NCBI GenBank assembly: GCA_965112735.1
Contig: OZ218963.1
Location: forward strand, 2,666,001 to 2,730,000
Length of the DNA: 64,000 nucleotides
Source: Phaeosaccion multiseriatum
Taxonomy: Eukaryota > Protista > Ochrophyta, other classes
Direction: 5' to 3'
The position numbers and the translations under genes were made by a program. Every line of letters begins with the position of its first letter. The stretch's first letter is position 1. Positions 17,203-49,869 of the stretch are shown in pieces. The notes beneath the pieces were generated by a model. That model made no database searches. It had not been told where the DNA came from and saw only the letters and a program-made list of their open reading frames with translations.

Positions 17203-18423
17203 GTGAGTGAAGGGAAAGTGCCCACGCTGGCGAGGATTGTGAAGTTCCGCTGGCGCAAAGCCACGGGGCTGCCACTGCGGCGAGAGTATAACGTGCGGTG
17301 GGCGGTGGCGGACGGCGGCACTTTCCAGACCTGGGAATGGGCTGAATGGTTGCTGGAGCGGGAACACGCCAAGGCCATAGAGGCGTTCGAGAACGCCCTT
17401 CCGCACACTGCCCTTGATCCAGGAGTGAATCTCAAAAGAGGGCATAGGTCTAAACGGGAAAGCACGATCCGTCTGCGGCAACATGAGAAGTGGGGCAGCG
17501 GTCTGGCGCACGAGACGCAATTCTATCGCTCGCATCTCGGCTTCTGAGTGTTAGAAGTCGTGCTTTTGCTAGACTGGTACCTACCCTCTGAATTCAGACC
17601 GGGAGGTACCAGTCTATCAAAGCACGACTTCTAACAAGCCCATTGCTAGAAGTCGAACCCCCCCCCCCCCACCGCACATAGTGGAGAGAAGTAACTCGCA
17701 GTCTGGGAATCAGACTAATGGGTGCCAGCCGGTACCAGTTTTCGCCGAAAAACACGCTTTTTTCACAAGCTACAGCCAGGGTTCGAACTCGCAATGGCCT
17801 TGTTAGAAGTCGTGCTTTTGCTAGACTGGTACCTCCCGGTCTGAATATATCCTGAACCTGAATATATTATATTATATTCAGACCGGGAGGTACCAGTCTA
17901 GCAAAAGCACGACTTCTAACAAGGCCATTGCGAGTTCGAACCCTGGCTGTAGCTTGTGAAAAAAGCGTGTTTTTCGGCGAAAACTGGTACCGGCTGGCAC
18001 CCATTAGTCTGATTCCCAGACTGCGAGTTACTTCTCTCCACTATGTGCGGTGGGGGGGGGGGGGTTCGACTTCTAGCAATGGGCTTGTTAGAAGTCGTGC
18101 TTTTGCTAGACTGGTACCTACCCTCTGAATATTTTTATTATAATTCAGAGGGTAGGTACCAGTCTAGCAAAAGCACGACTTCTAACATGAGGGAGCTGGC
18201 GGAAGAGGCGGGGGCGTAGTGAGGGGGATGTTAGAAGTGGCCTAGTTGGGGTCCCTTGGGGACCCAATCAGTAGTGTAACGGCCGGAAAACGGGCCAACG
18301 AGACGGTACATCAGTAATAAAGAAAGGAAGCGCAGCCTGCGTGTGGGCTGGCTTCCGGGTGCTTGCTTCAGCTTCTGCTCTGCTCTAGCTTGGCTTTGAG
18401 GCTAGCTGTCGGTAGTTTCGACC
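17203..18423 (+). mobile_element. Gy-EXO 3' fragment V (chromodomain, PPT, 3' LTR 18229-~18423), carrying an HP-A dimer
   Basis: Matches 59575-60675 once insertions are removed. Confidence 0.92.
17549..18187. mobile_element. HP-A head-to-head inverted dimer (hairpins 17549-17636, 17801-17921, 18086-18187)
   Basis: TGTTAGAAG...CTTCTAACA ends. TSD TGAG confirmed against the empty site near 59917. The whole unit is a ~640-bp palindrome. Confidence 0.93.
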
Positions 18424-20113: not shown

Positions 20114-20550
20114 GCCCCACATGGGATGAGGATGCATGAAGTGAATGGCGGCGAGTAAGGAGGCGGGCATCGTAACTCATTAATGCAATACTAGGTTCAG
20201 GATAATTTGACGTTATCTGAGCCTAGCTGTTGCGATATCTCCTCTACGATGACAGGGACAAGCTAGAGTAGTGTCAACTCGTGTATTAATAATACCTACT
20301 GAGAGATGCGTTCAAGGAAGTGATGGCCGTGGCCATACATGAATATCGATATCCACATCGATATTGTACGTCGATATAGTGCTCAGTCACAAATGGCGAT
20401 ACTTATCACAACACCCTCCTATGACTGAATCACTATCTCTCTTGATAGCTGACACTCTACCACAAACACAATGAGGAAACACCTGACTTGCCCTAAAACC
20501 CCCCCGAGACAAAGTCCTGAAAACCTCATACTAAAACTACTGAACTAAAA

Positions 20551-20990
20551 CTAGTCCCCCCCTTTCCTGTTTCCCTTCTTGAGCATCTGCCCCGCCAGAC
20601 CGCTGTGTACCTGAGGTGCCAATGCCTTGGTCATGATGTCCCCAAGCTGATCCTTTGTGCTGATGTACTGAAACCGAACGTGTCCCTTATCCACGTGGTA
20701 CTGCAGGAAATGATAACGAATGTCGATGTGACGTACGCGCTTGGTGCCCGCGTTGCCATTTGCCATCTGAATGCACCCTTGATTGTCCTCGTGCAAAATC
20801 GACTCCGTCATGTTGGCTCCTGGAAACAGAAACTCCAGAATCCCTCTGTGAAACAGTAACTCCTTCACTGCTTCCGCTTGCGGCCATGTACTCACTCTCC
20901 ATAGAGCACTGTGCTATGACCTTAAATAGTGTTGCCTTGTGAGCAATCACTCCCCCGCCGAATGTCACGACGTATCCCCCTGAGTTCCTG
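20551..20990 (-). pseudogene. Copia RNase H, frameshifted
   Basis: SGGYVVTFGGGVIAHK...SMESEYMA, then EDNQGCI...RHIDIRYHF...STKDQLGDIMTKAL. Confidence 0.9.
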
Positions 20991-22256
20991 CGCCTGTCGA
21001 CCTTGGTCCTGCTTCCACGTTGACCTCTACTGTACAGATCTCGCTCGCACCGAACCCTCGTGCCACGCTGACCCCTTCCGTACTTCTCTGTGGGTAGCGC
21101 ATCCCAGTCCGTCTCATGTGCGCCTCTGTCACCCTCACTGGTTGTCTCATACGTCCAATAATGACTGGCCTGCATAGTCTCCAGGTTCTGCTCTGCCTTG
21201 CTGTAATCTGGTTGCTCTGCTCTTGCTGCTCCGCTCTGCCTTGCTCTGATATGGCTGCTCTGCTCTGCCTTGCTCTGCTCTGGCTGTTCTTCTCTTGCTG
21301 CTCTGCCCTGCCTCGCTCTGCTCTGGCTTGCTCTGCTATGCCGCACTTCCTGCCGCTGCTCGGCTGTTGGACACCTCTGTCTCTGCTGGCTCTGCCTGCT
21401 GCCGCTTCCGCTGTGCGACTGGCTCTGCCTGTCTGTTGTCTTTGCCCCTTTCGGGAGTGGGCCCGTCCCTGCACGACGCTGCATATACTCTCCCGCCCGG
21501 CAGCGGAATGTCCGATGCTACCTGTGCCTCGAGTCTCATAGACTTTCTCGTTGGTGCCACTGCCTCTCCGTGCAGGTCTGCTTTCCCTACTTCTGTCTGC
21601 TTTTCTTCCTGCGCTGCCTGCTGCTGTTTGCGCTGCTGTTCGCGCTGCTGTTCGCGCTGCTCCACCAGTTGCGCCGTGTTTTCTCTGACTCCCTCTCTCT
21701 CTGTGGGACTCACGTCAGTCCCCACAAGCCCGCGGCTTGCTCCTACCCCTACCAAGTTCTCTACTCCTGGGTATATCTGGATGGCCTCCAACTCTGCCAT
21801 CGACTCTGTTTTCCCCGGCTCTCGCTGCCGTGGCTCAGCCTGTTTCGGCTCTGGTTGCTGCTCTGCCTCTTCCGGCTCTGCACGCTCTGGTTGCTGCTCT
21901 ACCGCTCCCGGCTTTGCACGCTCTGGTTGCTGCTCTGCCGCTCCCGGCTCTGCACGCTCTGGTTGTTGCTCTGCCTCTTCCGGCTTTGCGCGCTCTGGGC
22001 CCTGCTGTTCCTCGGGCCGGTCTACTGACGAACCTTCTCCGTGGCTCCCGCTGTCACCACTTCCCCCCTCCGCACTGCTTCTACTTCGTCCCCAGGGTTG
22101 GCTCTCATCCTCCCTGTCTGCTCCCTCTTGCGACTGGTTTGACACCGATACTTCCGGTGCCATTGCCACCCCCTCCTGGCTGCTGCTGCTGCGTCCCCAG
22201 GGTGGGTCTTCTTCCTTCCGCGAGATCTGACTTCCCGCATTTTGCTCATCGTCCCC

Positions 22257-22796
22257 TGTAAGAAGGCATCCTTTTGCTAGGCTGGCAGCTATCCACTGAA
22301 TATTCACGGGATAGCTGCCAGCCTAGCAAAAGGAAGCCTTCTTACATGCCTGTCAGTTAAGGTCGATCCTTCCCCCCCCTCCGAAAACTCCTCCGAAAAC
22401 CTTGGGGGGGTAACTACCTAGGATTTCTCCCACACCGAGCCCGTGAATTTCAGTGTCATGCCCAACTTTCGCCCTCGGAAATTTTCTCACCATCCACAGA
22501 ATCGAACCCCGTCTGGGCATGTAAGAAGGCATCCTTTTGCTAGGCTGGCAGCTACCCCCGTGAATATCGAGGGCGAAAGTTGGGCATGACACTGAAATTC
22601 GAGGTAACGGGCTCGGTGTGGGAGAAATCCTAGGTAGTTACCCCCCCAAGGTTTTCGGAGGAGTTTTCGGAGGGGGGGGAAGGATCGACCTTAACTGACA
22701 GGCATGTAAGAAGGCATCCTTTTGCTAGGCTGGCAGCTATCCACTGAATATATTCAGTGGATAGCTGCCAGCCTAGCAAAAGGAAGCCTTCTTACA
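22257..22796. mobile_element. HP-B head-to-head dimer with a partially deleted central hairpin
   Basis: TGTAAGAAG...CTTCTTACA ends; CCCC on both sides; two inverted internal copies. Confidence 0.9.
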
Positions 22797-23051: not shown

Positions 23052-23203
23052 TGTTAGAAGTCGTACTTTTGCTAGACTGATACCTCCCGGTCTGAATTCT
23101 TCTAGCAACGGTCTTGTTAGAAGTCGTACTTTTGCTAGACTGATACCTCCCGGTCTGAATTCAGAGGGCAGGTATCAGTCTAGCAAAAGTACGACTTCTA
23201 ACA
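23052..23203. mobile_element. HP-A deletion derivative (half hairpin, short spacer, full hairpin)
   Basis: TSD ACCT; interrupts the Copia-1 gag-like ORF. Confidence 0.9.
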
Positions 23204-24111
23204 ACCTGTCCCTCCTCTGCCCGAGCTGCTACTGCCACCTCTGCGGCTGCTGCTCGAGTTTACTCTGGCCTTTGTGGCCCCCAACACTGTTCCTCCTCCC
23301 GAGGTCTTGCTGGCCGACGCTGCCGCGGTCTTATTTCCCCCGCGCAGTGCCCTAAGTGCTTTCGTCTCGCTGTTCTCTGGCGTTGACGTTAGCTCCAACA
23401 CCTGTTGTGCTGGCCTCCCCCCACTGGGAGCTTCTATTCCTCCTCTTGAGGAACTGGTGGCTGGCTCTGCGGCGGTGTCTCGCCCCGCATCTGCTGCCTC
23501 CCACTGGTTACGGAGTTCGGCAAACTCTTCCTCCATTTGCTTCATCTCTCTCCGCAACTTTAATATGGCGATCTCTTTCGCCATCATCTCCAGCTGTTTC
23601 TTCAGCTGCTGCATTTCGTTTCTCTCTGTCTCTGAAAGTGCACTGACGGGCGCCGCTGCGTCCGCCTTTCCAACGCCTTCTTCTTCCGCGCCTGGCATGG
23701 CTAACGAAAGGACTCCCTTCTCTCTCACGTGAGTTATCCGACCAAAACTCGCCTGTGTGCCGTCGCCGACTACTCGTAGAACCAGCTAGCTGTGAAGTGT
23801 CGCGACAGCTGTCGTGTTGCGATATCTCCTCTACGATGACAGGGACAAGCTAGAGTAGTGTCAACTCGTGTATTAATAATACCTACTGAGAGATGCGTTC
23901 AAGGAAGTGATGGCCGTGGCCATACATGAATATCGATATCCACATCGATATTGTACTTCGATATGGTGCTCAGTCACAAATGGCGATACTTATCACAACA
24001 CTAGCACATACTATACCATTAGCAATGACAAGGACGTGAATTTCGCCGACACAGCGGTCGTCGCGTAGTGTTGTGAGATGATTCTTAGTGGGGTCTGTGG
24101 GATGCTCAGTA

Positions 24112-24235
24112 TGTGGTGTGGGGCCGCTATAGGACACGCCGACCATTGACTTATGGTCCTTCTCACTCTGAGGCCTTCCAACATCCCCAATGCCTATCCC
24201 GTAACCTTCCAACATCCCCAATGCCTATCCCGTCT
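24112..24235 (-). repeat. Fragment of an E-related element (PPT/LTR-start repeats and LTR start)
   Basis: Two copies of CCTTCCAACATCCCCAATGCCTATCCCG, as in E (35430-35480), followed by a diverged E LTR start. Confidence 0.65.
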
Positions 24236-24473
24236 CTGCGACCACCACCGCCGCAAGGTCTAGAACCCCAAATGTTGTGCCGTCTCCGCAGCGATGCCCA
24301 TCCCCCACTTCTCGTGCAACATGGCGCGCACGGTGCGCTCTTAAGCCGAGTCAATTCCTCCTTGCAAATGCTATGTCGCTCACAACCATGCTAGCGGCTA
24401 TCACCCACGAACCCACCCGGCTATCACACAGTCAGCCTGTTCGTCTTCAATGCCACTTGCCTCTAGGCGCTTC

Positions 24474-25105
24474 TGTAAGAAGGCTTCCTTTTGCTAGGCT
24501 GGCAGCTATCCACTGAATATTCACGGGGGTAGCTGCCAGCCTAGCAAAAGGAAGCCTTCTTACATGCCTGTCAGTTAAGGTCGATCCTTCCCCCCCCTTC
24601 GAAAAACTCCTCCGAAAACCTTGGGGGGGTAACTGCCTAGGATTTCTCCCACACCGAGCCCGTTACCTCGAATTTCAGTGTCATGCCCTACTTTCGCCCT
24701 CGGAAATTTTCTCACCATCCTCAGAATCGAACCCCGTCTGGGCATGTAAGAAAGCATCCTTTTGCTAGGCTGGCAGCTATCCACTGAATATTCACGGGGG
24801 TAGCTGCCAGCCTAGCAAAAGGAAGCCTTCTTACATGCCCAGACGGGGTTCGATTCTGAGGATGGTGAGAAAATTTCCGAGGGCGAAAGTTGGGCATGAC
24901 ACTGAAATTCGAGGTAACGGACTCGGTGTGGGAGAAATCCTAGGTAGTTACCCCCCCAAGGTTTTCGGAGGAGTTTTCGGAGGGGGGGGAAGGATCGACC
25001 TTAACGGACAGGCATGTAAGAAGGCATCCTTTTGCTAGGCTGGCAGCTACCCCCGTGAATATTCAGTGGATAGCTGCCAGCCTAGCAAAAGGATGCCTTC
25101 TTACA
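24474..25105. mobile_element. HP-B head-to-head dimer (hairpins 24474-24564, 24745-24835, 25015-25105)
   Basis: Three full 91-bp hairpins and two inverted internals. The flanks differ (no TSD), so it sits at a rearrangement junction. Confidence 0.92.
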
Positions 25106-27030
25106 GTCTCATACATCCAATAACGACTGGCCTGCATAGGCTCCAGGTTCTGCTCTGCCTTGCTCTGCTCTGCCTTGCTCTGCCCTGCCCTGATCTGGCT
25201 GCTCTGCTCTCTGTTGTGCTGTACGCTGCCTTCGTTGCACTCTCTGCAGCGCTCTTGCGGCGCTGTCTGCCGCTCTGTCCGACACACTGCCTGCTGGGGC
25301 TCTGCCGGCTGTGGCTCTACCCTCTGCTGCTGCTGTGCTGTCTGACTCTTCTCTTGTGTCTCCGTTGGCTCTGCCTGCTGCCGCTCTCGCTGTGCGACTG
25401 ACTCTGCCTGCCTCTTCTCTCTCTGAGCTGCCGGCTCTCCCTGCCGCTGCTCTGCTGTTGGACAAATCTGTGTCTCTGCTGGCTCTGCCTGCTGTCGCTC
25501 CCGCTGTGCGGCTGGCTCTGCCTGCCTCGTCTCTCTCTGAGCTGCCGGCTCTTCCTGCCGCTGCCCTGTTGTCGGACACCTCTGTGTCTCTGCTGGCTCT
25601 GCCTGCTGCCGCTCCCGCTGTGCGGCTGGCTCTGCCTGTCTGCTGTCTTTGCCCCTCTCGGGAGTGGGTCCGTCCCTGCATGACGCTGCACATACTCTCC
25701 CGCCCGGCAGCGGAGTGTCCAATGCTACCTGCTGAGCCACGGTAGACTTTCTCGTCGGTGCCACTGCCTCTACGTGCCGGTCTGCTTGCACTACTTCTGT
25801 CTGCTTTTCCGCCCGCGCTGCCTGCTGCTGTTCGCGCTGCTCTACCGGTTCTGCCTGCGGCTTCTCCGTCTGCACCGCCGGCTGCCGTACTTGCTTATCT
25901 ACCGGTTCTGCCTGCACCAGATGCTCCGTGCTCTCCCCAATTCTCTCTCTCTCCGTGGGACTCAGGTCAGTCCCCACAAGCCCACGGCTTGCTCCTACCC
26001 CTACCGAGTTTTCTACTCCTGGGTATGTCTGGACGGCCTCTGCTGCCATCGACTCTGTTTGCCCCGGCTCTCGCTGCCGTGGCTCTACGTGCTGCTCCTC
26101 AGACAGTTGCGGCTCTGTCTGCTCAGACTCTGCACGCACTGGTTGCTGCTCTGCCTCTTCCGGCTCGGCACGCTCTGGTTGCTGCTCTGCCTCCTCCGGC
26201 TCTGCACACGCTAGTTGCTGCTTTGCCTCCTCCGGCTCTGCACGCTCTAGTTGCTGCTCTGCCTCCTCCGGCTCTGCACACGCTAGTTGCTGCTCTGCCT
26301 CCTCCGGCTCGGCACGCTCTAGTTGCTGCTTTCTCAGACCTCCGCCTCGCGAAGTCCTCCCAAGCCGCTACCTTCTTTCCAAAGGCCGCTATTTCACTGC
26401 AGTAGGCCGCTATTTCACGACAGTCTTCGACGTTTCCATAGTTCGCTACTTCTATATAGCGCTCCCTCACTTTCTTCATGAGAGATTGTGCCTTCTCCAA
26501 CTCTGTCCAGGCTGCCAATTCCTCTGTCAATAGCTCCAGTTCTTTCGTGTAAGCAGCTAACTGCCGCTCCGATTCGCTTTCATTGTCAGGAACGGCTGTC
26601 TCTCCAACTGTTCCTTCTTTCAGCTCGGAAGAGAAGGTTTGCACCTTTGACTTGTAGCTCAAACAAATCAGAGAGCTGCTGCTACCGCTGCTGCCCCCCG
26701 TGCTGCCTCCCCCTCCCGCTATGGTGCCGCCACTGCTTGACGCACCTCCGGGGTCTCCTGCCCCTGACACAACAGAGCTTCCCGCTGCTGATCCTGTGTC
26801 TAACTTGGCCAATAAGTTGGTCAGGTTTGCTATCTGCTGGCTGCTGTTGCTGCTTATTTTGCTCCTGCATTTGCATAAACAGCTCCTGAGGAGACATATC
26901 GCCTCCACCTGCTCCGACGTCAGCGAACTCTTCCTCCCCATCCCCTTTCTGCTCTGTCCCGCTAGCATGCCCCCCAGGCATGGGTACCGCAAGACAGGAC
27001 CACGTCCCCTGTTGATTTACACTCACTTCG

Positions 27031-30000
27031 TGTTGCCTTCAGATAGGCTACACTACCCACTTAGATGAATAAAGCTTTATTGTAGCCAATCCCGCTATCG
27101 CTAGCAAGTCGGAAAGTGAGCCAATATTTGAAGAGATGGGTGCAAGGTTGTAAAGTTTGGAGGCCTTGCCTCAGCTCTAGTAAAGAATCGAGTCTCCTTT
27201 AGCTTTAGGGTGGATAAGCTAAGAGTGAGGGAGCGCCACAGACTACTACTCCCGGTGGGCTGTGTGCCACCTCATTGTGCCACGTAAGATGTCATATGGG
27301 CATGGTGACAGTTACACGTACTAAGGCAATGAATATGAGGCTGTAGGGGCAACACTTCCCCCTCGAGAGAGAAGCTCGACTAACGAGAGCGTGACTAAAC
27401 TAAATGCTAAAAGAGAAGATGAGAAAGAGAGAGAACATGTTCATATGAATAAAAGTAACCAAAAAGGGTTCCCGAAGGGTTTCCTTATCGGCGGCCTGCT
27501 CGCGGGCGTCGGCGTGACGAGGGGCCGCGAGACCGAAGGAAGCGCTTAGCATCCTCCGCCAAAGAGCGACGAGGGAAAGAGGAGAGGAATTGCTCTAAAA
27601 GAGCAGGAACGTCATCATTCATGACTGTCAAAGGTTCCCAAGTATCGTCGGTGGCATTGAAGCCCTTCCAGGAGGTGTGAACCTGCCAGGGAGCGCCTTG
27701 AGAGGGACGTTGTAGGTCCTTGAAGGCGGAGACGACCCAGGAGGCTGAGTCGTGTGAGATCTGCTTAAGTAGCTCAGTACTGACATTGAGATGCTGGTCA
27801 GCGTAGTAGCGCAAGCGGCAAGCGTGCACTTCAGAGGTTTGCTTCGAGACAAGGTGTTGCACTTTGTAGACCAGAGTGTCAATCTCCTCCAGCACTTTAT
27901 AAGGGCCTTGCCACACTCCAGAGAGCTTGGAGTAGCGGCTGTTGGAAGCGACAAGGACATAGATGCCCGGCATGTAGAGGCCTTCGTAGTTGAGGGCAGC
28001 CGAGAGAGCCAGCTCCTTGCGGTGTTGATGTCCAAGACGAGTAGTGTCCAGACGACGATTGTGACGGTCGCGAGCCGTCGCCCGCGAGCGCTCAAGTTGA
28101 GCAGCAACCCGTTCGTGTCTCTCTTCAAGAACCGCTTGCAGCTGAGCACCATAGTGGTTGAGCTGTTCAAGAGTTGGCGGCGAAGATTGGAAGTCAACAT
28201 CGAAGCTGTCGCCCTGTTGCAGGACGATATCAAGTGGAGTTGTCGAACGTAGGCCAGTGTGCAGAAAGAGTGGAGTCTCTTTGCGGGTCGAGCTGATCGT
28301 GGTGTTGATGGCAGCTTGGACCAGAGGTGTGATCAGATTGTAGTCGTCCGCGTCAATGCGAAACTCAGAGAGGAGAGAGCGGTAGACTGGAACGACAGTG
28401 CGTACAGCTCGTTCAGCGAGACCATTACTCCAAGCAGAGTATGGAGCCGAGAAGCGATGTTTAGCGCGAAGCTCAGTCGCTAGGCGCTTCATCACATGGT
28501 TGAGGAAGTGACTGCCTCGATCACTCTGCCACTTGCTCACTACTCCGAATGTGCTGAACCAGCGCATCAATCCACCGACAGCTGCGTCTGCAGTGGTGGA
28601 AGCGCATTCGTTGAGCATGGTGTAACCACTGAAGGCATCTTGGATGACCAACAGGTATGGCAAGGAAGTGCAGCCCAAGTCATGCATGTGGACGAAGTCG
28701 AAATGAATCATCTGATTGGGCTTGGTAGGGTGGACCGCACCGCGAAGAGGGCGAGGTATGCGATGCCCATGGGAGTTGGTGAGGCAATGGAGGCAGAGGT
28801 CAACAAAGCGAGTCAGGTCGGCACCAATGGTGTGCCAGTGGAATCGTTCCGAGAGAACGGAGAGAGTGGTGTCGGCAGCGCGATGCCCTGCCGATCCTTG
28901 ATGTGCAATGACAGAGAGTCGGACTTGTAGGTCAATGTCGTCATTGGGTATCCACAGAGGACGTGAAGACGGCGATTGAGGTACCACAATGGCGTCGAGG
29001 TTAGCATCATGCTCCAAAGAAGGAAGGTGCTGCTGAGCTGCAAGCGCTTCGAGAGTGAGCGTGCCTTGGGCAGCCGCTTGAGAAGAGCGAATCTCCGCGA
29101 GAGAGGGCCACTCAAAGTCACTGTCCATGGAGTCGTGCACTGATCCTGGAGAGAAGGTGCGTTGGAGGGCACTCACGCGTACAGTGTGGTCTTCCGGAGG
29201 ATCAAGAGGCTTTGTAGCAGAGCCTGGGACTGAGCGGAAGCGAGAGGTCATGTCACCCCACACGTTCAGCTCGCCACTAAGGTGGGCGATTTCATAATCA
29301 AAGCCCGAGAGGAACACAGACCAGCGTTGCAATCGCTCGCGTGCTGGCTTGTGTACGTCACTGATGATGCTAATGGGCCTGAAGCAGTATTGCAAATTGC
29401 GGTGATCAGTGTAGATGAAGAGATGCACACCAGACATCAGCCAAGGCAGGCGTTCAAAGGACTGGAGGATAGCAAAGGCTTCCTTGTCAATGGTGGCGTA
29501 GTTGAGCTGAGCTCCGGCAAAGCTACCGCTGAGGAAGGCAAGAGGCTCATGGCGCTGTTCGGCGATGGGCTTGCTGAGGTCCTCAATGGGCACTTGCGTC
29601 ACCACATTCCCCCAATGGAGATCACTGGCATCAGGAAAGACACAGCGAGCCTTGTCAGGGTCAGGATGAGCAAGCTTGACTTGATCTGCCAGAGCGTCTT
29701 TCAGAGCTTGAAAGGCTTTGGAGTGCTCAGGGCCCCACCCCACCGAAGAGAGGGAGACGGAGCGAGCGACACGCTTGGTGCGAGGAGTAGGAGCGGCAGT
29801 GGCGTCAGGGTGACGTCTCTGCTTGCGGTTGCCAGCTGCGGAGAAGACGGTTTGGTTGAGCTCTTGCAGAGGAGCGACGAGCTCTGCAAAGCGTGGGATG
29901 CAGTCTCGCATCCAGCCAGCAGCGGCGACGAATTGAATCAACTCAGCACCGTTCTTGGGCTCCTCGAGGTCGAGGAGACCTTGGATCTTGACAGGGTCAT

Positions 30001-30614
30001 GTTTGACGCCGTCGCCATCATAGATCTTCCCGCAGAACTTTTGCGAGTTGCCGATGGATACACCCGAGAGCCCGAGCTTGAAACCGGCCTTGGCGAGTGC
30101 ATCGAGCACAGACTGAAGAATGGAGCGGAACTCTTCCTCCGTGTGGGCCCAGATGGTGATGTTGTCGATCCAGGTAACAAGGTTGGTGCCGAAATGTTCA
30201 GAGAGGCACTTAGCTAGAGTGCTCTGTGCAAACTCACTGGCATTGAGGATGCCTTGAGTCACACGCGTGGGAGTAAACTTCCCGTCAGGGGTGCAGTAGG
30301 TGAGGATCTCTTGGCTGGAGAGATCGAGGGGCAGCTGCCAGAACATGTTGGCAAGGTCAAGCTCACAGAAGAAGCGTGCTCCGCGCATCTTGGCACTGAT
30401 CTCAGAGAGATTGGGCATGGGAAAGCGGGAGCGAAGAGTGCGAAGGTTGACCTCTTGGTAGTCAGCTACCTGCCTGAACTGTCCAGGCTTGCCGGGCTTC
30501 TGATCTACTATTTTCCTGTGGACTTGGTGTACCCATAGGACTTCTACATCTTCTTGGATGGGTATCGATACCCTTGAATGGGCGATATTTTTTGTTGCCT
30601 TCAGATAGGCTACA
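27031..30614 (-). mobile_element. Gypsy element G2 lacking gag/PR; 3' LTR 27031-27354; 5' LTR only a 22-bp remnant (30593-30614)
   Basis: PPT GAGGGGGAAG then TGTTGCC...GGCAACA. TTCG flanks both ends. Confidence 0.8.
27485..30505 (-). CDS. pol: G2 pol: RT, RNase H, integrase, chromodomain (open, but 5'-truncated)
   Basis: FRQVADYQEVN, ELDLANMFWQ, RVTQG, WIDN; FPDASD; HHCC; HFDF...SDRGSHF...NGLAER; GPY; SWKGF...DDTWEP. Confidence 0.9.
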   Translation of the reverse strand, partial: DQKPGKPGQFRQVADYQEVNLRTLRSRFPMPNLSEISAKMRGARFFCELDLANMFWQLPLDLSSQEILTYCTPDGKFTPTRVTQGILNASEFAQSTLAKCLSEHFGTNLVTWIDNITIWAHTEEEFRSILQSVLDALAKAGFKLGLSGVSIGNSQKFCGKIYDGDGVKHDPVKIQGLLDLEEPKNGAELIQFVAAAGWMRDCIPRFAELVAPLQELNQTVFSAAGNRKQRRHPDATAAPTPRTKRVARSVSLSSVGWGPEHSKAFQALKDALADQVKLAHPDPDKARCVFPDASDLHWGNVVTQVPIEDLSKPIAEQRHEPLAFLSGSFAGAQLNYATIDKEAFAILQSFERLPWLMSGVHLFIYTDHRNLQYCFRPISIISDVHKPARERLQRWSVFLSGFDYEIAHLSGELNVWGDMTSRFRSVPGSATKPLDPPEDHTVRVSALQRTFSPGSVHDSMDSDFEWPSLAEIRSSQAAAQGTLTLEALAAQQHLPSLEHDANLDAIVVPQSPSSRPLWIPNDDIDLQVRLSVIAHQGSAGHRAADTTLSVLSERFHWHTIGADLTRFVDLCLHCLTNSHGHRIPRPLRGAVHPTKPNQMIHFDFVHMHDLGCTSLPYLLVIQDAFSGYTMLNECASTTADAAVGGLMRWFSTFGVVSKWQSDRGSHFLNHVMKRLATELRAKHRFSAPYSAWSNGLAERAVRTVVPVYRSLLSEFRIDADDYNLITPLVQAAINTTISSTRKETPLFLHTGLRSTTPLDIVLQQGDSFDVDFQSSPPTLEQLNHYGAQLQAVLEERHERVAAQLERSRATARDRHNRRLDTTRLGHQHRKELALSAALNYEGLYMPGIYVLVASNSRYSKLSGVWQGPYKVLEEIDTLVYKVQHLVSKQTSEVHACRLRYYADQHLNVSTELLKQISHDSASWVVSAFKDLQRPSQGAPWQVHTSWKGFNATDDTWEPLTVMNDDVPALLEQFLSSFPRRSLAEDAKRFLRSRGPSSRRRPRAGRR

Positions 30615-30966
30615 TTCGTTTTCTGCCGCTGAACAATTAAATTGCGGAACCAGCTAGCTGTAGAGATGTTCGCGACAATTGTCGTGTTGCGATGTCCCTC
30701 CCGCACTATGATACGTAAGCTATTGTGTGTGTCAACTAATATATATTGCCCTTAACAGAACCATAAACGTAGTACGAGGCCCAGAGCCCCAGAGTTGAAG
30801 ATCCCAAGTGTGGACGTTATCAATATTGGGCATCCCACAGACCCCAATAATGATCATATCACAACAGGTGGCGGTAAGACAGAAGAATCAGATCAATCAT
30901 CTCCACTGACTTAGCGGTCGCTGAGAAATGAAAAGTGGGCTGGCGTGCTCCCGATCGGCCCAATAC

Positions 30967-31270
30967 TGTGGGGCCGCTACCTTCCTCTGCCTAAGAGTAA
31001 GAAGGTATCCCCAAGCTGAGCGCTGCGTTCCGGCCCCAATATGGGGAGAAGATACCAATGCTAGCACCAAGTGTATTGATAATAAGGACTATCCCACCCT
31101 AAGACCCTGGACAGCCTCCTTGTTAAAAGGAGAGCTATCCACTTGGTCTATACGGGTTCAGGAGTGCGGAGGGGCCAACCAGGCCCTCAAAAAGGCCGCG
31201 TCCCACATCATTGACTTACTACTCTACCTACCAAATAATACGTAATTGAGCCTGTCCCATCTCTACCACA
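30967..31270 (-). repeat. LTR of family C
   Basis: TG...CA, 304 bp, homologous to the solo LTR at 52980-53282. Interrupts the Gy-EXO sister pol. Confidence 0.8.
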
Positions 31271-32968: not shown

Positions 32969-33163
32969 TGTTAGAAGTGGCCTAGTTGGGGTCCCTTGGG
33001 GACCCAATCAGTAGTGTAACGGCCGGAAAACGGGCCAACAGACGGTAAATCAGTAATAAAAAAAAGGAAGCGCAGCCTGCGTGTGGGCTGGCTTCCGGGT
33101 GCTTGCTTCAGCTTCTGCTCTGCTCTAGCTTGGCTTTGAGGCTAGCTGTCGGTAGTTTCGACA

Positions 33164-33172
33164 ACCCGGAAG
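33164..33172 (+). promoter_or_regulatory. Non-tRNA primer-binding site ACCCGGAAG, complementary to LTR 33092-33100
   Basis: Immediately follows the LTR CA, has no TGG, and pairs with CTTCCGGGT inside the LTR. Confidence 0.7.
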
Positions 33173-35913
33173 ACCCGAAAGACACAGGTCTGAGATCCAG
33201 CTTTGAGGCTGATTTATTGTGTTGGCTTGAGCTTTGCTTCCAGCTGCCCAGCTTTAGGCCGTAGACAGCTTTGGGCTTGCTAGGGTGGCACTGGCTGAGG
33301 CGGGGATGGACTTCCTGCGTTTCCACGCTGCTAGGGTGGCCATGGCTGAGGAGGGGATGGACTTCCTGAGTCTTTCATCGGCGGAGGGCGCTACGAGTGA
33401 CGCTGAGGGCGGTGGAGCTGATGGTGGTGCTGCGGACGTGGGGTCTGTGGTATCGGAAGCTGCTGCTCCTCCTGCGGAGGTCACTGCCAGCCCTGGGGCT
33501 GTGGACCGTGTGCGGGCGGCGTTGCGTAGGGGGGAGGAGTCCCTGGAGTCGCCCTCTTTTTTTGAGGGGTCTGCGATTACGGCTGCTGCCGCTTCCCCTC
33601 CTGCTGCTGGGGTGAGGCCGCTGCCGGTGGCGGCGTCGGAGGTTTCCTTCCACTCGGGGGATGCAGAGTCGGTGGGCCAGGAGGACTCGGGGGATGCAGA
33701 GTCGGTGGGCCAGGAGGAGAGCACGGTGTGGGATGTGGTTGGCACGCCCTTGGTCCCTCTTGTTGGTGCGTCTGGCGGGGCTCGGGTGGTGGATCAGCCA
33801 GCGGAGGGAGAGAAGACACCGGAGCAGGAGGACACGCGGGTTCTCCAGGAGGGGCTTGAGATGCTGACGCAGCACCAAGCTGCGCAGCTCATGGCGGCCC
33901 AACTGCGGGAGAGCAAGGCGGAGACGGCGGCCCTCCAGCGGGAACTGGAGGTGCTGCGGCTCTCGCGGGGGGCGGAGCAGCAGCGGGAGTTTGCGGTGGA
34001 GCTGCAGCAGCAGGTGGCGGCGGAGCTGCAGCGACAGATGGCGGCGCAGCCGCCGCCGAAGCGGCCGCCTGAGGGTGCTGCCCAGTTGGAGGTGGAGACG
34101 TTGCAGTGGGAGCTGTTAGCGGCGCAGCTCCAGCAGGTTAAGGATGCCGCACCGGGGGGGGTAGAGGTGCTGCAGCAGCAGGTTAAGGATATGCTACAGC
34201 GGGACATGGAACGGCAGCGGGAGCGGGCACGGCAACAGGCCCTGGATGTGCTGCAGGCGCTCGCCCGTCATACGGTGCAGACGATCACGCTGCCCGTGGG
34301 TGCTATCCGTGTGCTCCAGGAGCAGAAACTTCCCTCTCTATTCGATGCGGCTGGACAGCCTCATCCTCGTGCTGTGGTGCTCGCACGCATGTACAACTGG
34401 GTGAGCATTCTGCAAGGACAGGAGATCTTGACTTCTACTGGGTCCGTGCTTCCGGGCCAAGGGCGGGTGATGGAGCAGCGAGTGCTGGCCGACTTGGGTG
34501 CAGTGGATCGGGCCACTGTGTTGGAAGGCCTCAGATGAGATGGGCCATAAGTCAATGGCCCAGGCCCAGGCAGATACAGTGAGAACGGGTGGCGTGGCTC
34601 TCACTATCCTATGTGCGAAGGTGGTCGTTTAGGACTAGCATGCGATAAGTTAATAGAGGCAAGGCTGGCTGCTAGGCTGGCTTTGGGGTTGCTGTTACCT
34701 TGTCCGTGTGTCTAGTTCTATCCTATCTGTAGGCGACAGCGCATGTCGGTCGTGCGTACGTCGTTTTACAACCCCAAAGGCCCGAAAGCAGCACTTAGCC
34801 AAGAGGCTTAGGCAGGGAAGGAAGAGGCGTGTTAGGGGAGCACCGTGCGGCACATAAGCAGTGCCGTACGACGTGCGACAGCAGCGGAGTTGTTGTTGCA
34901 CGGAGAGGCGGGAGTGGAGATAGAATTGCCGGGAGTGGTGTCTACAGCGGGCACGGCTTTCGAGTGTGGCAGCAGCGCGGCTGTTGCTGTTGCACGGAGC
35001 TTGGCGGGAGACAGAGAAGGATACTCGCAAGGCTGCTTTAGGGACTGTCTGGGTGCCTTGCAGGTACACCAGTAAACACTTTAGCAGTCAGCATTAGTGG
35101 TGCGCAACGAGGCTTTCGCAACGCTGGTGGCGAGTAGGAGTGGAGAAAGATATGGTGCGGGTGAGTTTGAGTCGTGGGATCTTCTCATCCGTGAGCCTGT
35201 GTGGGTGAGTTTGAGTCGTGGGATTTTCTCATCAATACAGGGGGTGTGTGTGGGAGGAGCGGTCGCACACATCTGGGTGAGTGTTGCATAATGCTCATCC
35301 GTTTTCTTTTTTTGGAAGCAGCATGGAGGCTTGTGCGACAGTCGAGCTTCAGTAGGCGAATCCGCTTGTGTTGCGTGGGGACACGCAACAGTCTTGTCAA
35401 GGGGATGTTGGAAGTGGCGGATAGCTATTGGGGATGTTGGAAGGCCCCGGGATAGGCATTGGGGATGTTGGAAGGCCTCAGATGAGATGGGCCATAAGTC
35501 AATGGCCCAGGCCCAGGCAGATACAGTGAGAACGGGTGGCGTGGCTCTCACTATCCTATGTGCGAAGGTGGTCGTTTAGGACTAGCATGCGATAAGTTAA
35601 TAGAGGCAAGGCTGGCTGCTAGGCTGGCTTTGGGGTTGCTGTTACCTTGTCCGTGTGTCTAGTTCTATCCTATCTGTAGTGTCGAAACTACCGACAGCTA
35701 GCCTCAAAGCCAAGCTAGAGCAGAGCAGAAGCTGAAGCAAGCACCCGGAAGCCAGCCCACACGCAGGCTGCGCTTCCTTTCTTTTATTACTGATTTACCG
35801 TCTAGTTGGCCCGTTTTCCGGCCGTTACACTACTGATTGGGTCCCCAAGGGACCCCAACTAGGCCACTTCTAACATCCCCCTCACTACACCCCCGCCTCT
35901 TCCGCCAGCTCCC

Positions 35914-38900
35914 TCAGAAGCCGAGATGCGAGCGATAGAATTGCGTCTCGTGCGCCAGCCCGCTGCCCCACTTCTCATGTTGCCGCAGACGGATCGTGCT
36001 TTCCCGTTTAGACCTATGCCCTCTTTTGACATTCACTCCTGGATCAAGGGCAGTGTGCGGGAGGGCGTTCTCGAACGCCTCTATGGCCTTGGCGTGTCCC
36101 CGCTCCAGTAACCACTCAGCCCATTCCCAGGTCTGGAAAGTGCCGCCGTCCGACACCGCCCACCGCACGTTATACTCTCGCCGCAGTGGCAGCCCCGTGG
36201 CTTTGCGCCAGCGGAACTTCACAATCCTCGCCAGCGTGGGCACTTTCCCTTCACTCACCTCGTCCAGCTCTAAGCTACGCTGCTCCTGCATTGCGCTGGT
36301 AGCCCACTGAGGAGAGCACCAACGGATATGATACCTGGCGAATCCTTCCGGGAGACCGAAGGGTCGCTCGCTCACCCCATCGATGAACGGCTTCGTCAAG
36401 TCTCTGTGGTACGCCCGTTGCAGCTGCTCCACACCATTGCCGCGCACCCGTTTCATAGACAGATACACTGCGCTGCGCTGCATGACCTGGTAGTGCTCTT
36501 CACTCACCCGCCCATGCTGAGCACAGTAGGCCCCCAGAGCTGGCCAAGGCAAGACTGTATAAGGACCATCCCACGAGTGCTGCAGAGCCTTGAGTTGCGC
36601 TGACGGGGGCCCTTCGAGTTCTTCCCCTTCTTGCTGGGCGGCGGCACCAGGACGATACAACATCACCTTGGTTCCGGGTCGCAGGGGCGTCGGCCAACGG
36701 CGTGAGGCGTTCTTCAGCTGCAATCTCCCGTGGTAGTCGCAGCGCCTCCCATTGACCACCGCCGCAGCCGCAGCCAGACGTGCCCGCAGTTCGTGGACCC
36801 ATGCCGAGGCAGACGAAAACGACCCGTCCTCCACTAGCGCCGGAAGCATCGCCTGTAGAGGCACCGGGGGGTGCCGACCGAACAAGGCGTAGAATGGCGC
36901 CATCCCCGTGCTCTCCTGCGAGCGGCAGTTGTACGCATAGGTGAGCCCGGCGACGTAATCTGGCCACTGCTGCATCTGTGACTCCACGGTCGTCGCCAAC
37001 ATGTCCTTGATCGTGGCCATGAAGCGCTCCACCTGCCCATTGGCCTGTTGGTGCATCGGCGTCGTGAACACTTGCGACGCCGATAGAACTCGCATCACAT
37101 CGCCCATGAGCGCACTGGTGAACTGCGAGCCTTGATCACTCACCAGCACTCGGGGCACACCCAGGGTGGTGACGACATGCCGCACGAAGGCCCGAGCAAT
37201 ACCTTCCGCCGTATAGTCCTGTGCCCTCAAAGGCACCACCACTGTCCACTTCGTGAACCAATCCTGAAACACCAAGAGGTACTCCTCACCGCCCATGCCC
37301 ATAGGAAAGGGGCCAGCCACATCAGCGCCCATGACCGCCCAAGGTCCATCCACCTTGGAAATGGACGACAGCGGCACAGGCTTTGGCTGCCGGCGAGGAG
37401 TCTTGCGTGTCTGGCACGCCAGACAGGAGCGGGCCCAATACAGCGCATGTGCATTCATCTTCTCCCACCATACGCGCTCTTGCAGCGCGTCTAGCATACG
37501 TCCCGGGCCTTGGTGCCCACCTGCGATGGCATCGGTGTGGGCGGCATGCAGCAAGGCTGGCCGCATCTCCTTGGGCACACATACTTGTAGCCGAGTGTGC
37601 CGCACCCGCCACCGAAAGCCCCCAGGAGCCCACTTACGCATCAAGAGCCCGTCCTCATCCACAAAGAACTCACCCCCACCTGCATCCACCACGCCGCCGG
37701 TGGGCCCAGCCTGAACACGGCGACGGAGTGCTTCCAGCTCCGCATCAGCCCGCTGCGCACGCACCCACCACGCGGCCTCGACATGCAGACTGCCACCCAA
37801 AGCTCCAGCCGCTCGTCTGTGCGCCGCGGCAGCAGGCACCGTGCCTGGTAGAGACCACCCAAACTGTCGCTCTGCCTCTCGTCGATGCCCATCAAGCTCG
37901 CGCTGCAAGGTGGACTCCTGCTCCACCGGCTCCTTGGAAACTGAATCCACTGCCTCCTCAGCTTCATTATCCACTGCATCCGCAGCTTCATCACCTGCAT
38001 CCCCCGCTTCTTCCGTGACCAGTAGATCTGCCGTACCAGGCTCCGACGGCGACTCCGCAGCAGGCGGCTCCCCAGGGTGGGTGATGCGGCCCTCCTCCGT
38101 AACAAGCTCCTCCGAGGGCAGACGAGACGCATCCTCCTCAAGCTCGGCCTCCCATGCAGCCCACGCATGAGCGGCCGCGGCACCCGTTTGCTGAGCCTCC
38201 GCTGGTGTGCACATCGAGAAGTAGTCACGCGACACCTGACGGACTTGCTTCCATGGCAACTCGATCATGGTATCTAGATGACTGGCCAACGCGCCCACCA
38301 CCTTCCGCTGGCGCTTATATGTCCGCGTGAACCGCTCCACCAGCTGCATCATTGTCTCCCACGAGCACTGCAGTTTGAATTGCAGTTTGGCCAGGTCGAA
38401 TACCTCCAACGTCTTGGAGTGGACACCAAAGATGTAGAGCGGTGACACGTGGTCGCGATCGCCCCAATAACCAACCGCGGCCTGCATGAACCTGCCGACT
38501 TGCATCTCCTCCTGCTCCGCAGGGGTGTGAGCAGGGCTCATCGCGCTAAGCTCCACCCCCGGGCCACCATGGACGAACGGCACACACTCCGCCATGCGAG
38601 GCCAGAGGCGGAGGAGCGCCGCAGCGTCAGCAAACGCGTACTCCCGTTGAGCGGCGGACAGCGGCCGCTTCGTCCAATCGGTGGCCCGCTCCTCCTTGCT
38701 AAGGTGTTGCTCCAAAAACATGCTGACAAGGTCCTGGAGTCCGATGAACTGAGTATGTTCGGGGCACACGCGCTTAAAGAGGTCACTGGTGTCCACCAAG
38801 TTGACGATGTGCTGGACATGCTCCGCGAGCTCCGGCCATCGGCCCAGGGCACGTTGGTCGTGACTCCAGTGGTGAGCCAGCTTCACAATCGAGGGTTCGG

Positions 38901-41900
38901 TCCACAGGTCCCGCAACACTTGCGCCAGTACCATCATACCCCCCGCCTTCTGAAGCGCGTCTAGATCAATCAAGAGCCCATAGTCACGCGCCACATCCGG
39001 CAGCGGCCCAACCTGCACGGCCAATTGCAGCAGCGACGCGCGCCGTCGGTGACGCGCCCACTCCGAATCCATAGCGACCACTTTGGCTGAGCGCAACTGA
39101 GTCGATAGAGCCTGCACGTGCCTCGGCGTAGACACGTACGTGCACCTCGCTGCGGAAATGTGACTCACAAATGGCGGCATCTGACCCAGCTGCCAGGCCT
39201 CTATCACAGCCTTCTTCACACCCAGCTGGGGTGCTCGCGTAGGCTGCCATCCACATTGCTGAAGACGCTGTGTCCAAGCACGCCGAGCAGTACCCCTGCG
39301 TGACTGCGTCGCCGCCAAGTCCACCTCTGCAGTCTGCCAGGCTTGTAGGGCCTCCGCTCCGCTCTGCTGCTGGTGGTGGCACCGTTGCTGCTGTTGCTGG
39401 GCCGTCACGGCAGGCACAGGAATAGGAAGGCGTGTGTCGGCTTCGCCCTGCAGCTGTTGCGCCACTGCGAGAAAGCGAAGCAGTGCGCCCTCCGTGGGCT
39501 CCTCCCAATGAAGGCTGCACTCGTCCCCTACCATCTCCACCAGGTTCAACTGCACCCCCATCGAAGCACACCAGGTGTGCAAGGGCGACGGCCACTCGCA
39601 CGCAACCATGGCCAAGTCTACCCCCGCATGCGTCTCCCACTCCTGCACCGGAAGCGCGTTGCGAGAGAGGCAGTCAGGCACCACCATTTGCTTCCCGGGA
39701 CGATGCACAAACTGCAAGTGGTGCGTAGAGAGCCGCTCGTACCATCTGAACAGCTTGGAATTGGTATCCTTGTGCCCAGCCAACCACAACAAGGGCTGAT
39801 GGTCCGTCACCACTGTGGTGGGGTAGTGGCAGATGTACATGGCCAGTTTGCGCACACACCACACCACTGCCAGCAGCTCCAGCTCCGTGCTGCTCAGTCG
39901 CGCCTCCGTCTCCGTGGTAGCCCGACTGATGAACGTCACCACACGCTCCTCCCCGGTCGCATCTTTCTGAGAGAGCACTCCTGCTAACCCTTCCGTCGAG
40001 GCATCGGTACTCAGGGTGAAAGTCGTCGCTGGCCCGTACTCCGGAAAAGCCAGTGCAGGGGAAGACAACAAGTCGGCAACGAGTCCATCCCAAGCTGCAT
40101 CGTGCGAGGCATTCCAGGCGGTGCTCACGTCGACGCCCTTACGCAGCAGCCCATTGAGGGGCCGCACTTTGCGCGCAAACTCCGGAATGAAACGGCGAAA
40201 GTAGCTGAGCATGCCAATGAAACGCCGCACCTGCTTAACTCGATTGACGCCGCCATCCTTCGCAAGCAACCTCAACGGCTTGACCAGCTCTTGCACCGCC
40301 GCATGCTTGGCCGGGTCTGTGCGCACCCCATTCTGATCCAGCAAATGCCCGCAGAACCGCACCTCCGGTGCACCCAATACAGCCTTACTCGGCTCCAACT
40401 TGAGCTTGTGCTCCACCAACCGCGCAAGCACAGCATCCAAATGCTCCAGATGCTGCTCAACCGTAGCCGAAAACACAGCAATATCGTCCACAAAGCATGC
40501 CACATGCTCCTGAAGCCCCTTGAGCACCTTGTTCATAAGCCGCACAAAGACTGCAGGCGCATTCTTCGCGCCCTGCGGCATCACTCGCCAAGCGTAAGTT
40601 CCACTGTGGCACACAAAGGTGGATATGTCCTCTTCCGCTGCTGATGCCATCGGCACATTGAAGTAGCCCGACATGATGTCCATCACCGAGAACACCTTGG
40701 AGCCATGCATCTCTGCCAGCAGATCATCAATCACCGGCATCGCAGGGGCCTCCGTGCGACACGCATCATTCAGCTGAGACAAGTCACACGTCATACGTAC
40801 CACAGGCGTCCCATCCTCATGACACTTGGTTTTGCCAGCTGCGTCCGTCTTCAAGACCGCCATCAGCGGAGTAGCCCAGCTGGAAGTGCTGGGGCGAATG
40901 ATGGCAGCCGCGAGAAGCTTGTCAATCTCAATCTCAATCCCCCGCCGCAAATGTGGAGGATACCGTCGAGCGGAGCTCCGAATGGGCTGCTGATTCGCAT
41001 CCTTCAGTCCCCACTCAAAGAAGAGAGTATCCGTCCGACCGTAGTCACCAGGCCTCTGACAGAATGCTTGCGACCGAGCGCGAAGGATCGCCACCAGTCC
41101 CCAGCGTTGCACCTCCGTCCAGGCACCGTCGCCAATCGTGATAGCGTGCAGGGGCGACGGTAGCTCCCTGAGCCAGAACTGAGCCCTCTCCGTAGTGAGC
41201 TTGGCACGGCGCCGCTGCTCCACCACAAGCTCTCCTGCATCCCACGACTCCACTCCCCCACCAAGACAGCGACTCTCCTGCAGCACCGTTCGCAATTGGA
41301 TGAGGAGCAGCAGCGCATTGGTCATATCCTGCTCCACCTTCTCCTGCTGCTGTAATGGGCGACTAGACCACAACGACAAGAGCTGTTGGGCCCATGCGGC
41401 CACAGCAACGTCCCCAACGCCGCTCAGACCCGTGCCAGCGGCTTGGTGTACATGGGGGCGCAGGAGCAGTAGCGCGGTCACAGCCCCTTCCTCTGCCGCA
41501 ACCAAGCACTCGCGCAGACGTCCATACACTCGCTCTGACAGGTGAGGGTACCACTCCTTGATCAACTGCACTCCTGCCATCAGAGTCCCACCGGACGTGT
41601 CACTCTGGCTACCGAGTCGCAAGGCACCATCCGCATCCAGTACCCACCCATCACCGCGTAGGTCAGTCAATGATGTGCCCACCGCCGCCGACGATGAACC
41701 TGCCTCGGACCGTAGTGGCGGTTCCTCCGACGCCACTGACGATGCCGCCCCTGGCGCAGGCCTGCTGGTGGAATCATCAGCCCCCGCCACGTGGTGGACC
41801 TGCAGCTGGCCTGTACGAGGCGGTCGGGGCTCCTGCAACTGTGTCTGACGGCGTCGCGCTACCGCCGCCGGAGCCACCTGCTGCTGTACCGCATTGGACC

Positions 41901-45550: not shown

Positions 45551-45602
45551 GCGCTGCGGTCGTGGGCCCCAGGGCTGCTGGCCAAGCAGCCCCGGGGCAC
45601 CG

Positions 45603-45903
45603 TCAGCCTTCGAACTTGAACCCGTCCTGCGCCGCCAGAGTGCCCGCCACCATTGCTGCTACGGCTTCAGACATGTCGGACTCCTGGTGCTGCGCTCTGA
45701 CCGCCTGCCGCCGCTGCACGCGACTCACAATGCCGAGCAGCTCCTCACGCGTAGCGGGGATGGCGTTGCATTCTATCCATCCATGGCCGGCGCGGCGACA
45801 AGTCATGCAGTTAAATGGGGCATTGCCGTTGCCACGCTGCTTCACCGAGCCGTGGAACAGCAAGGGCCGCTGCTGGGTGGGCGTGAGCCGCGGCTGCTGC
45901 GCC

Positions 45904-45938
<35 letters not shown>

Positions 45939-48682: not shown

Positions 48683-49037
48683 TGTAAGAAGGCATCCTTT
48701 TGCTAGGTTGGCAGCTACCCCCGTGAATATTCAGTGGATAGCTGCCAACCTAGCAAAAGGATGCCTTCTTACATGCCCAGACGGGGTTCGATTCTGAGGA
48801 TGGCGAGAAAAATTCCGAGGGCGAAAGTTGGGCATGACACTGAAATTCACGGGCTCGGTGTGGGAGAAATCCTAGGTAGTTACCCCCCCAAGGTTTTCGG
48901 AGGAGTTTTCGGAGGGGGGGGGAGGATCGACCTTAACTGACAGGCATGTAAGAAGGCATCCTTTTGCTAGGTTGGCAGCTACCCCCGTGAATATTCAGTG
49001 GATAGCTGCCAACCTAGCAAAAGGATGCCTTCTTACA
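48683..49037 (+). mobile_element. HP-B monomer (355 bp): hairpin, internal region, hairpin in direct orientation
   Basis: Inserted in X gag at CTTACG|CTCTCT with no TSD (empty site visible in copies W and Y). Confidence 0.93.

Positions 49038-49211: not shown

Positions 49212-49242
<31 letters not shown>

Positions 49243-49836: not shown

Positions 49837-49869
<33 letters not shown>

Follow-up and report, generated by a model that had tools for sequence, protein, structure and literature searches.

A 632-nt palindrome at positions 24474–25105 of a 64,000-nt stretch of the genome of the ochrophyte Phaeosaccion multiseriatum (contig OZ218963.1; the whole stretch is referred to as the window, and all coordinates are window positions) is one of four inverted dimers formed by small repetitive elements that carry a hairpin terminal repeat (HP). 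In the best reading of the nine insertions found within these 64 kb, the HP elements constitute two related families of miniature, non-coding, non-autonomous long terminal repeat (LTR) retrotransposons of approximately 355 bp, similar to the miniature terminal-repeat retrotransposons known as TRIMs, whose 91-bp LTR is palindromic. We estimate at about 0.5 the probability that these mini-retrotransposons use the machinery of a gypsy element and that the dimers are double-length complementary DNAs (cDNAs), joined at their primer-side end and then integrated. The dimers most likely record strand-switching during copying of the element, not the activity of a parvovirus-like replicon. Our inferences concern the passage through RNA, the helper element, the strand-switching step and the cause of the polarity; the structures themselves are described below.

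Structure and polarity of the dimers

The palindrome at 24474–25105 (dimer C) has the order HP – inverted internal segment – HP – internal segment – HP, with three 91-nt HPs alternating with two oppositely oriented internal segments of 179–180 nt (Table 1). Its arms are 95% complementary across 192 nt around a 15-nt centre, and they have diverged by about 3% in the internal segment and by 5% over the whole arm.

The sequence-only reading had listed four such structures (A, B, C and F) as head-to-head HP dimers. Their coordinates and inverted layout proved correct. B has only half of a central HP and a truncated right unit, and F is a hybrid of two families and thus not composed of a single element. 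In dimer A the internal segments are identical (164/164), while the central HP is of the b..b' type and the right HP of the a..a' type, both with expanded loops (the central one greatly so). The two units of dimer B show no substitutions relative to each other, and a 6-nt block present in the right unit is missing from the left one, an absence common to D and F; the internal segment of the right unit begins at position 43 (the first 42 nt are absent). In the centre of dimer F, a partial family-2 HP adjoins a family-1 internal segment truncated at position 62. The centre is therefore different in each case (a full HP in C, an HP with an expanded loop in A, half an HP in B, a partial family-2 HP in F), which points to four independent events and not to copies of one master.

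Mapping of every internal segment in the window revealed that adjacent internals always run minus then plus, with the GTTCGA-side ends meeting in the centre and the G-tract ends directed outward. That the same end is central in all dimers had been claimed from the letters alone, and it holds in four cases of four, with n = 4 only (p = 0.125 against a 50:50 expectation; p = 0.004 against random end-to-end joining in the ratio 1:2:1). The accompanying claim that no head-to-tail or tail-to-tail dimers occur was confirmed within the window, where no such pair was found among all mapped internals.

Integration of dimers A and F as units

Empty sites for comparison were provided by paralogous copies of a 12.4-kb Ty3/gypsy-like element, with which the window is packed; the flanks were compared as separate pieces. 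Dimer A interrupts one copy of this large element, and the tetranucleotide TGAG is duplicated exactly at both ends of the dimer, with the empty site visible in three paralogous copies. Dimer F interrupts a 3' LTR, where CTCT is duplicated exactly and the empty site is present in six LTR copies. Since these exact 4-bp duplications surround the whole of A and the whole of F, each of the two integrated as a single DNA. To this extent the earlier suggestion that unresolved intermediates had been integrated is borne out: A and F entered their targets as units, as judged from 4-bp duplications on empty sites.

Single copies behave similarly. Monomer E is flanked by a duplication of GTCA (verified on one empty site) and the solo HP by one of TGTT (verified on two), and ACCT stands on either side of the deleted copy at 23052–23203, as read from its flanks. 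The flanks of dimer B are C runs, compatible with a CCCC duplication, which makes this case ambiguous.

Duplications internal to the dimers, which would have indicated insertion of one element into another, were also looked for. No 4-bp direct repeats flank the central HP in any of the four dimers, so element-into-element insertion was not their origin. This bears on a chromosomal origin in general, either by template-switching between the HPs of a resident monomer or by nested or adjacent insertion followed by collapse of HPs (similar to "double Ds"). Palindromes are template-switching hot spots, a truncated HP-HP tandem occurs at 61136–61304 (within copy G), and dimer C has no flanking duplication. 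Switching in situ, however, cannot produce the chimera F or the heterodimer B and would give both polarities, while nesting predicts internal 4-bp duplications and four HPs, neither of which is seen, and the duplications flank A and F as wholes. We consider such an origin very unlikely.

Fold-back artefacts of assembly or sequencing have next to no probability. Chimeric reads could create the perfect 231-nt palindrome of dimer A, but the four structures differ from one another and have asymmetric centres, the arms diverge in B, C and F, and the exact duplications lie in otherwise collinear flanks for which paralogous empty sites exist. The dimers may thus be taken as genuine, as the sequence-only reading had assumed.

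The hairpin repeat and its two families

The family-1 HP is 91 nt long, starts with TGTAAG and ends with CTTACA; its 35-bp stem carries a small bulge that is asymmetric, and its tip is short and palindromic. The family-2 HP is approximately 72% identical to it, has the ends TGTTAG..CTAACA and is associated with an internal segment of its own. Folded as single-stranded DNA, the HPs have energies of −38 to −60 kcal/mol (z-scores of −12 to −23 relative to shuffled sequences), and all local hairpins of at least 24 nt in the window belong to these two families. Changes on both sides of the stem were found in 10 of 35 pairs, between as well as within families, with 99% of cells paired. Since pairing has been kept through compensatory changes, the hairpin is either selected for or regenerated by copying.

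The state of the asymmetric bulge was compared with the orientation of the neighbouring internal segment. The same state was found in 9 of 11 HPs on the 3' side, and in the remaining two the bulge is self-complementary, not flipped. The observation that the bulge appears in both orientations, made earlier as a sign of flip/flop termini, is correct as such, but the orientation follows that of the unit (monomer D, whose HPs are direct repeats at 91/91 positions, included). With the bulge fixed relative to the internal segment there is no true flip/flop.

A perfectly self-complementary bulge occurs in three HPs (the centre and right end of dimer A, and the right end of dimer B), all three of which have an expanded loop, compared with 1 of 14 other HPs (Fisher p = 0.006). 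An expanded loop together with a self-complementary bulge is the residue expected of copying of one arm from the other after a stop in the loop. In addition, five rearranged copies have their break points in or beside the HP loop. The proposal that the nascent strand folds back and primes its own second strand thus finds a footprint in three HPs, but it is not generally valid, since F and B need two templates.

These observations bear directly on the strict form of that proposal, in which a terminal hairpin normally primes the second strand of a replicon and the dimers are its unresolved intermediates. Such a replicon would account for the arm-from-arm copying with loop expansion in three HPs, the very stable terminal hairpins, the lack of a recognisable canonical primer-binding site or purine tract, the proportion of dimers (4/9 insertions) and their single polarity. 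Nevertheless, two of the dimers (B and F) are chimeric, so that the derivation of both halves from one molecule is true for A and compatible with C; the HPs are direct repeats without flip/flop; and no nickase, resolvase or Rep-like gene was found among the long open reading frames (ORFs) of the window. Moreover, intact asymmetric bulges predominate among the 3' HPs, and obligate arm-from-arm copying would erase this asymmetry. A replicon of this type is therefore disfavoured, and we regard it as improbable.

Folding potential is not confined to the HPs. In the family-2 internal segment at 17922–18085, the ~24 nt at the start and the ~24 nt at the end form an inverted repeat, with a score reached by 1 in 5000 shuffled sequences, while the effect is weak in family 1; a whole monomer strand can be folded into a long panhandle.

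LTR-type features and a candidate helper

The two HPs of monomer D are identical as direct repeats (91/91), compared with 86 matches, 4 mismatches and 2 gapped nt when aligned in inverted orientation. Direct-repeat identity is also complete in monomer E (46/46) and in the deleted copy (48/48). The HPs of monomers are thus direct repeats, which is the pattern of LTRs and not that of mirror-image terminal inverted repeats. All copies have the ends TGT..ACA. Over its first 10 nt, the family-2 HP is identical to the start of the LTR of the large Ty3/gypsy-like element, and a 4-bp duplication is common to the HP elements and the large element; past the terminal 10 nt, no similarity of HP or internal segment to the body of the large element was detected. 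The ends, the 4-bp duplications and the solo HP indicate an integrase-dependent LTR retroelement, and nothing resembling the parvoviruses and poxviruses invoked by the sequence-only reading is present. Copy 1 of the large element (Table 1) is the probable source of integrase and reverse transcriptase for the HP elements; this role of a gypsy partner is suggested by the shared termini and duplication length.

The same features distinguish the HP elements from DNA transposons. A miniature inverted-repeat element similar to Ginger, or a foldback element, would have the long inverted structure either as the element itself or as a composite moved by its outer ends. Ginger1 elements reportedly (Bao, Kapitonov and Jurka, 2010) have TGTNR-type termini and 4-bp duplications, and the termini and duplication length found here are of this kind; the inverted sub-terminal repeats of the family-2 internal segment would also fit. 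On the other hand, the HPs of monomers are direct and not mirrored, as the asymmetric bulge shows, a solo HP has a duplication of its own, the dimer centres are all different, and there is no transposase in the window. This explanation seems highly unlikely.

Another possibility is a non-autonomous Penelope-like or other target-primed retroelement, in which the HP would be a pseudo-LTR, produced by partial tandem copying, and the inverted unit would arise by priming from both nicked strands, in a manner resembling twin priming. Penelope-like insertions often combine direct pseudo-LTRs with an inverted, 5'-truncated copy at the 5' end, and one of the non-autonomous kind, MRC1, had formerly been taken for an LTR element (PMC8557442). 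The dimers in the window have the same layout, with 5' ends in the centre and one unit truncated in B and in F, and dimer B lies in a C run, a preferred target of Chlamys elements. Against this, the duplications are constantly of 4 bp, and the outer ends are always complete HPs (TGT..ACA) that match a gypsy LTR. Neither head-to-tail multimers, variable 5' truncation of the outer ends nor tails are found among the copies in the window, Rfam scans detected no hammerhead motif, and its long ORFs include no GIY-YIG or Penelope-type reverse transcriptase. Such an origin is, in our judgement, quite unlikely.

The large element has several features of its own. In its pol region, RNase H and integrase are separated by a DEDD 3'-5' exonuclease domain similar to RNase D / Rrp6 / mut-7 (PF01612, E = 8e-21; approximately 38509–39201 in the ORF 35914–42378 on the minus strand, and also in the ORF 55704–59333 on the plus strand), a domain listed in none of the 76 pol relatives found. 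The first 9 nt past the 5' LTR (LTR and these 9 nt together at 47926–48130, minus strand) are complementary to positions 125–133 of the 196-nt LTR, and judging from this complementarity the element looks like a user of Tf1-type self-priming rather than of a tRNA primer site. A second, unrelated Ty3/gypsy-type pol with reverse transcriptase, RNase H and integrase is located at 27485–30706 (minus strand), with its nearest relatives, 30–38% identical, in oomycetes and metagenomes. Overall, protein searches with pol and ORF sequences of the window returned only proteins of 24–38% identity from scattered eukaryotes and metagenomes.

Proposed origin of the dimers

In the reading that we favour, the HP elements depend on a Ty3/gypsy element, for example the 12.4-kb one, for integrase and presumably also for reverse transcriptase and particle, and each inverted dimer was already a single DNA of double length when it was integrated. 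In it, two first-strand copies would be joined through the end synthesized last, next to the 5' LTR, by one of two routes: (i) the 3' end of the first strand folds back on itself at the palindromic LTR, and its own strand is copied (this may have produced A and probably C), or (ii) the 3' end is transferred to the first strand of another template in the same particle (which may have produced B and F). The double-length product, with complete hairpins at its ends, would then be inserted by integrase with a 4-bp duplication. In this scheme the primer-side end would always be central because a free single-stranded 3' end exists on the first strand alone; it is located on the primer side and, once the 5' LTR has been reached, is a hairpin.

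The individual dimers distinguish between the two routes. The identical internals and perfect 231-nt palindrome of A, and in C the differences private to one arm, as if the arms had been identical at birth, fit a snap-back. Two templates are needed for F, with two families inside one duplication, and for B, whose sub-variants are set apart by a 6-nt indel. In retroviral reverse transcription, strong-stop DNA able to form a hairpin is documented to prime on itself as a side reaction (PMC6088434).

The dimers could also have arisen in another way: two incomplete cDNAs, with finished 3'-LTR ends but unfinished primer-side ends, may each have contributed the finished end to one concerted integration with a 4-bp stagger, after which the host joined the ragged inner ends by end-joining or by hairpin annealing. 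For the chimeras, truncations and polarity this would do as well as the favoured scheme. This would account for the flanking 4-bp duplications, for the chimeras B and F and for truncated centres with 0–1 nt of microhomology, and the polarity would follow, the 3'-LTR end being the one completed first. Integration of two donors, supposed here to take place in vivo, is known from in-vitro work with integrase. However, the junctions between internal segment and central HP are exact to the base in A, in C and on one side of both B and F, which is unusual for end-joining, and A is a perfect 231-nt palindrome. We therefore think this course of events unlikely.

Several results weigh against the favoured scheme of strand-switching between first strands. 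No target-site duplication is evident in the flanks of dimer C, and of these flanks the right one alone matches the paralogous region at 21144 (74% identity). Monomer D is inserted bluntly, with a duplication of 0 bp and no loss, as two empty sites show. Dimers account for four of nine insertions, a high proportion for an aberrant by-product, and as a statistic their polarity is thin at n = 4. Of the reverse-transcription schemes that were tried, none alone accounts for dimer A with its b..b' centre as well as its a..a' right end. After the 5' HP no tRNA-type primer site was recognised: no TGG is present, ARAGORN found no tRNA and Rfam no tRNA-like match. Nor does a polypurine tract abut the 3' HP, the G run ending 23–25 nt upstream in both families; the purine tract of the large element lies immediately beside its LTR. 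Finally, a search for the 20-nt arm pattern in metagenome, prokaryote-genome and viral contigs gave chance matches to single arms only and no hairpin.

The site of monomer D ends in 5 nt equal to the sub-terminal CTTAC of the element, and this copy may represent capture at a break rather than an integrase-mediated insertion.

The priming arrangement of the HP elements appears unconventional. A variant of the above scheme would make this its central feature: the palindromic LTR would stand in for the tRNA primer site as well as for the purine tract, the hairpin would prime synthesis, and the inverted dimer would be a regular intermediate or product. We consider this unlikely. If true, a hairpin-primed element would be the reverse-transcribing counterpart of rolling-hairpin replication, and hairpin priming would yield, as a side effect, loci with perfect long hairpins from which RNA silencing of their own family could be supplied.

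Rfam scans at the gathering threshold and at permissive settings returned only generic sub-threshold matches to microRNA hairpins and no ribozyme. A tRNA-derived short interspersed element, suggested by the GTTCGA motif, was considered and dropped, as it was unsupported by ARAGORN or Rfam.

Inventory of copies and neighbouring sequences

The positions of the HP elements and of the presumed helper are summarized in Table 1.

Table 1. HP elements and the Ty3/gypsy-like element in the window.
Feature	Position	Strand	Remarks
Dimer C, left outer HP, family 1	24474–24564		3' LTR of the inverted left unit; 91-nt palindrome TGTAAG...CTTACA; bulge canonical (b..a' in unit orientation)
Dimer C, internal of left unit, inverted	24565–24744	−	BLAST match to the full internal, minus strand
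Dimer C, central HP, common to both units	24745–24835		Bulge canonical for the left unit; without flanking 4-bp direct duplication
Dimer C, internal of right unit	24836–25014	+	5 substitutions and 1 indel relative to the left internal, each private to one arm
Dimer C, right outer HP	25015–25105		3' LTR of the right unit
Dimer A, family 2 / family 2	17549–18187		Arms 100% complementary, 231 nt, 23-nt spacer; duplication TGAG
Dimer B, family 1, two sub-variants	22257–22796		Central HP consists of left arm and half loop only (22520–22567)
Dimer F, hybrid	60111–60629		Inverted 5'-truncated family-1 unit and family-2 unit; within the 3' LTR of a large-element copy
Monomer D, family 1	48683–49037	+	HP – internal – HP
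Monomer E, family 2	52795–53411	−	Nested insertion of ~312 nt; 5' HP partly deleted
Deleted copy, family 2	23052–23203	+	Left arm and loop of HP, last 15 nt of internal, full HP
Solo HP, family 2	61747–61837		Own 4-bp duplication TGTT
Complex copy G, family 2	61136–61522	−	Truncated extra HP, HP, internal, 5' HP cut in loop; right boundary rearranged, hence uninformative on duplications
Ty3/gypsy-like LTR retrotransposon, copy 1, 12.4 kb	35680–48130	−	Reverse transcriptase, RNase H, 3'-5' exonuclease and integrase domains; 196-nt LTRs 100% identical; duplication CTAC

Dimers B and C are flanked by 36-nt tandem repeats and CT-rich low-complexity tracts (21761–22049 and 26049–26373; 25150–25400), and the regions around 20228–21640 and 23815–25840 are diverged paralogues of each other. 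The ~312-nt segment nested in monomer E (TGTGG..CCACA, 52973–53284) is 85% identical to the sequence at 30967–31270 and probably represents a solo LTR from a further family.

A further small non-coding LTR element occupies 34519–35679 and 48131–48172. Its 214-nt repeats are 100% identical, with ends starting TGTTGGAAGG, and its start is almost like that of the large-element LTR and the family-2 HP. This element forms part of a three-level nesting, in which it lies inside one copy of the large element (32969–34519 and 48173–60110) and is itself split by copy 1.

Comparison with known systems

To our knowledge, the multimers of LTR retrotransposons described so far are head-to-tail, and no precedent for a palindromic LTR or for inverted LTR-retrotransposon dimers was found in the literature. 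Inverted dimers formed through one hairpin end are known from the rolling-hairpin intermediates of parvoviruses and of the concatemer junctions of poxviruses. The HP dimers are likewise joined through one particular hairpin end, but they show no flip/flop, their HPs are direct repeats, two of them are chimeric, the window holds no initiator gene and insertion is of the integrase type. In twin priming of L1, two cDNAs are joined 5' end to 5' end within one target-site duplication, with a truncated junction. The HP dimers share the 5'-to-5' joining within one duplication and the truncated junction, but differ in having no poly(A), a fixed 4-bp duplication and complete terminal repeats. Penelope-like insertions resemble them in their direct terminal repeats and in the head-to-head inverted copy, often truncated, with the 5' end in the centre; the HP elements, in contrast, have a constant duplication of 4 bp and ends matching a gypsy LTR, and lack a ribozyme, tails, head-to-tail partial tandems and a nearby Penelope-type protein.

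The closest parallels in overall design are TRIMs and small non-autonomous LTR retrotransposons (SMARTs), which are also tiny and non-coding, with direct TG..CA terminal repeats, a short fixed duplication, solo repeats and, as presumed for the HP elements, dependence on an autonomous LTR element. The HP elements differ from both in that their repeat is only 91 bp long and a near-perfect palindrome, and in having neither a tRNA primer site that could be recognised nor a purine tract next to the repeat. Their multimers are inverted and share a hairpin, unlike those of TRIMs such as Cassandra, which reportedly form head-to-tail arrays (PMC7215508). A fully palindromic 91-bp LTR is an unusual minimal design and raises the question of priming.

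A counterpart of the proposed joining step is retroviral strong-stop self-priming, in which the end of the first strand folds and primes itself; in the HP elements the hairpin comprises the entire LTR. For retroviruses the reaction leads to a suppressed dead end, and snap-back products of reverse transcription are mainly known as such from the test tube, whereas in the window double-length products were apparently completed, integrated and fixed, inter-family chimeras included. The natural insertions keep inverted double-length products (A and F in single duplications), one of them a chimera of two families. The dimers may therefore be regarded as fossils, preserved in the genome, of transfers between DNA strands of like sense in the course of reverse transcription, and of the packaging of two parasite families in one particle. 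Each dimer is also a ready-made gene for a long hairpin, with possible consequences for the silencing of its family and for the stability of the genome nearby.

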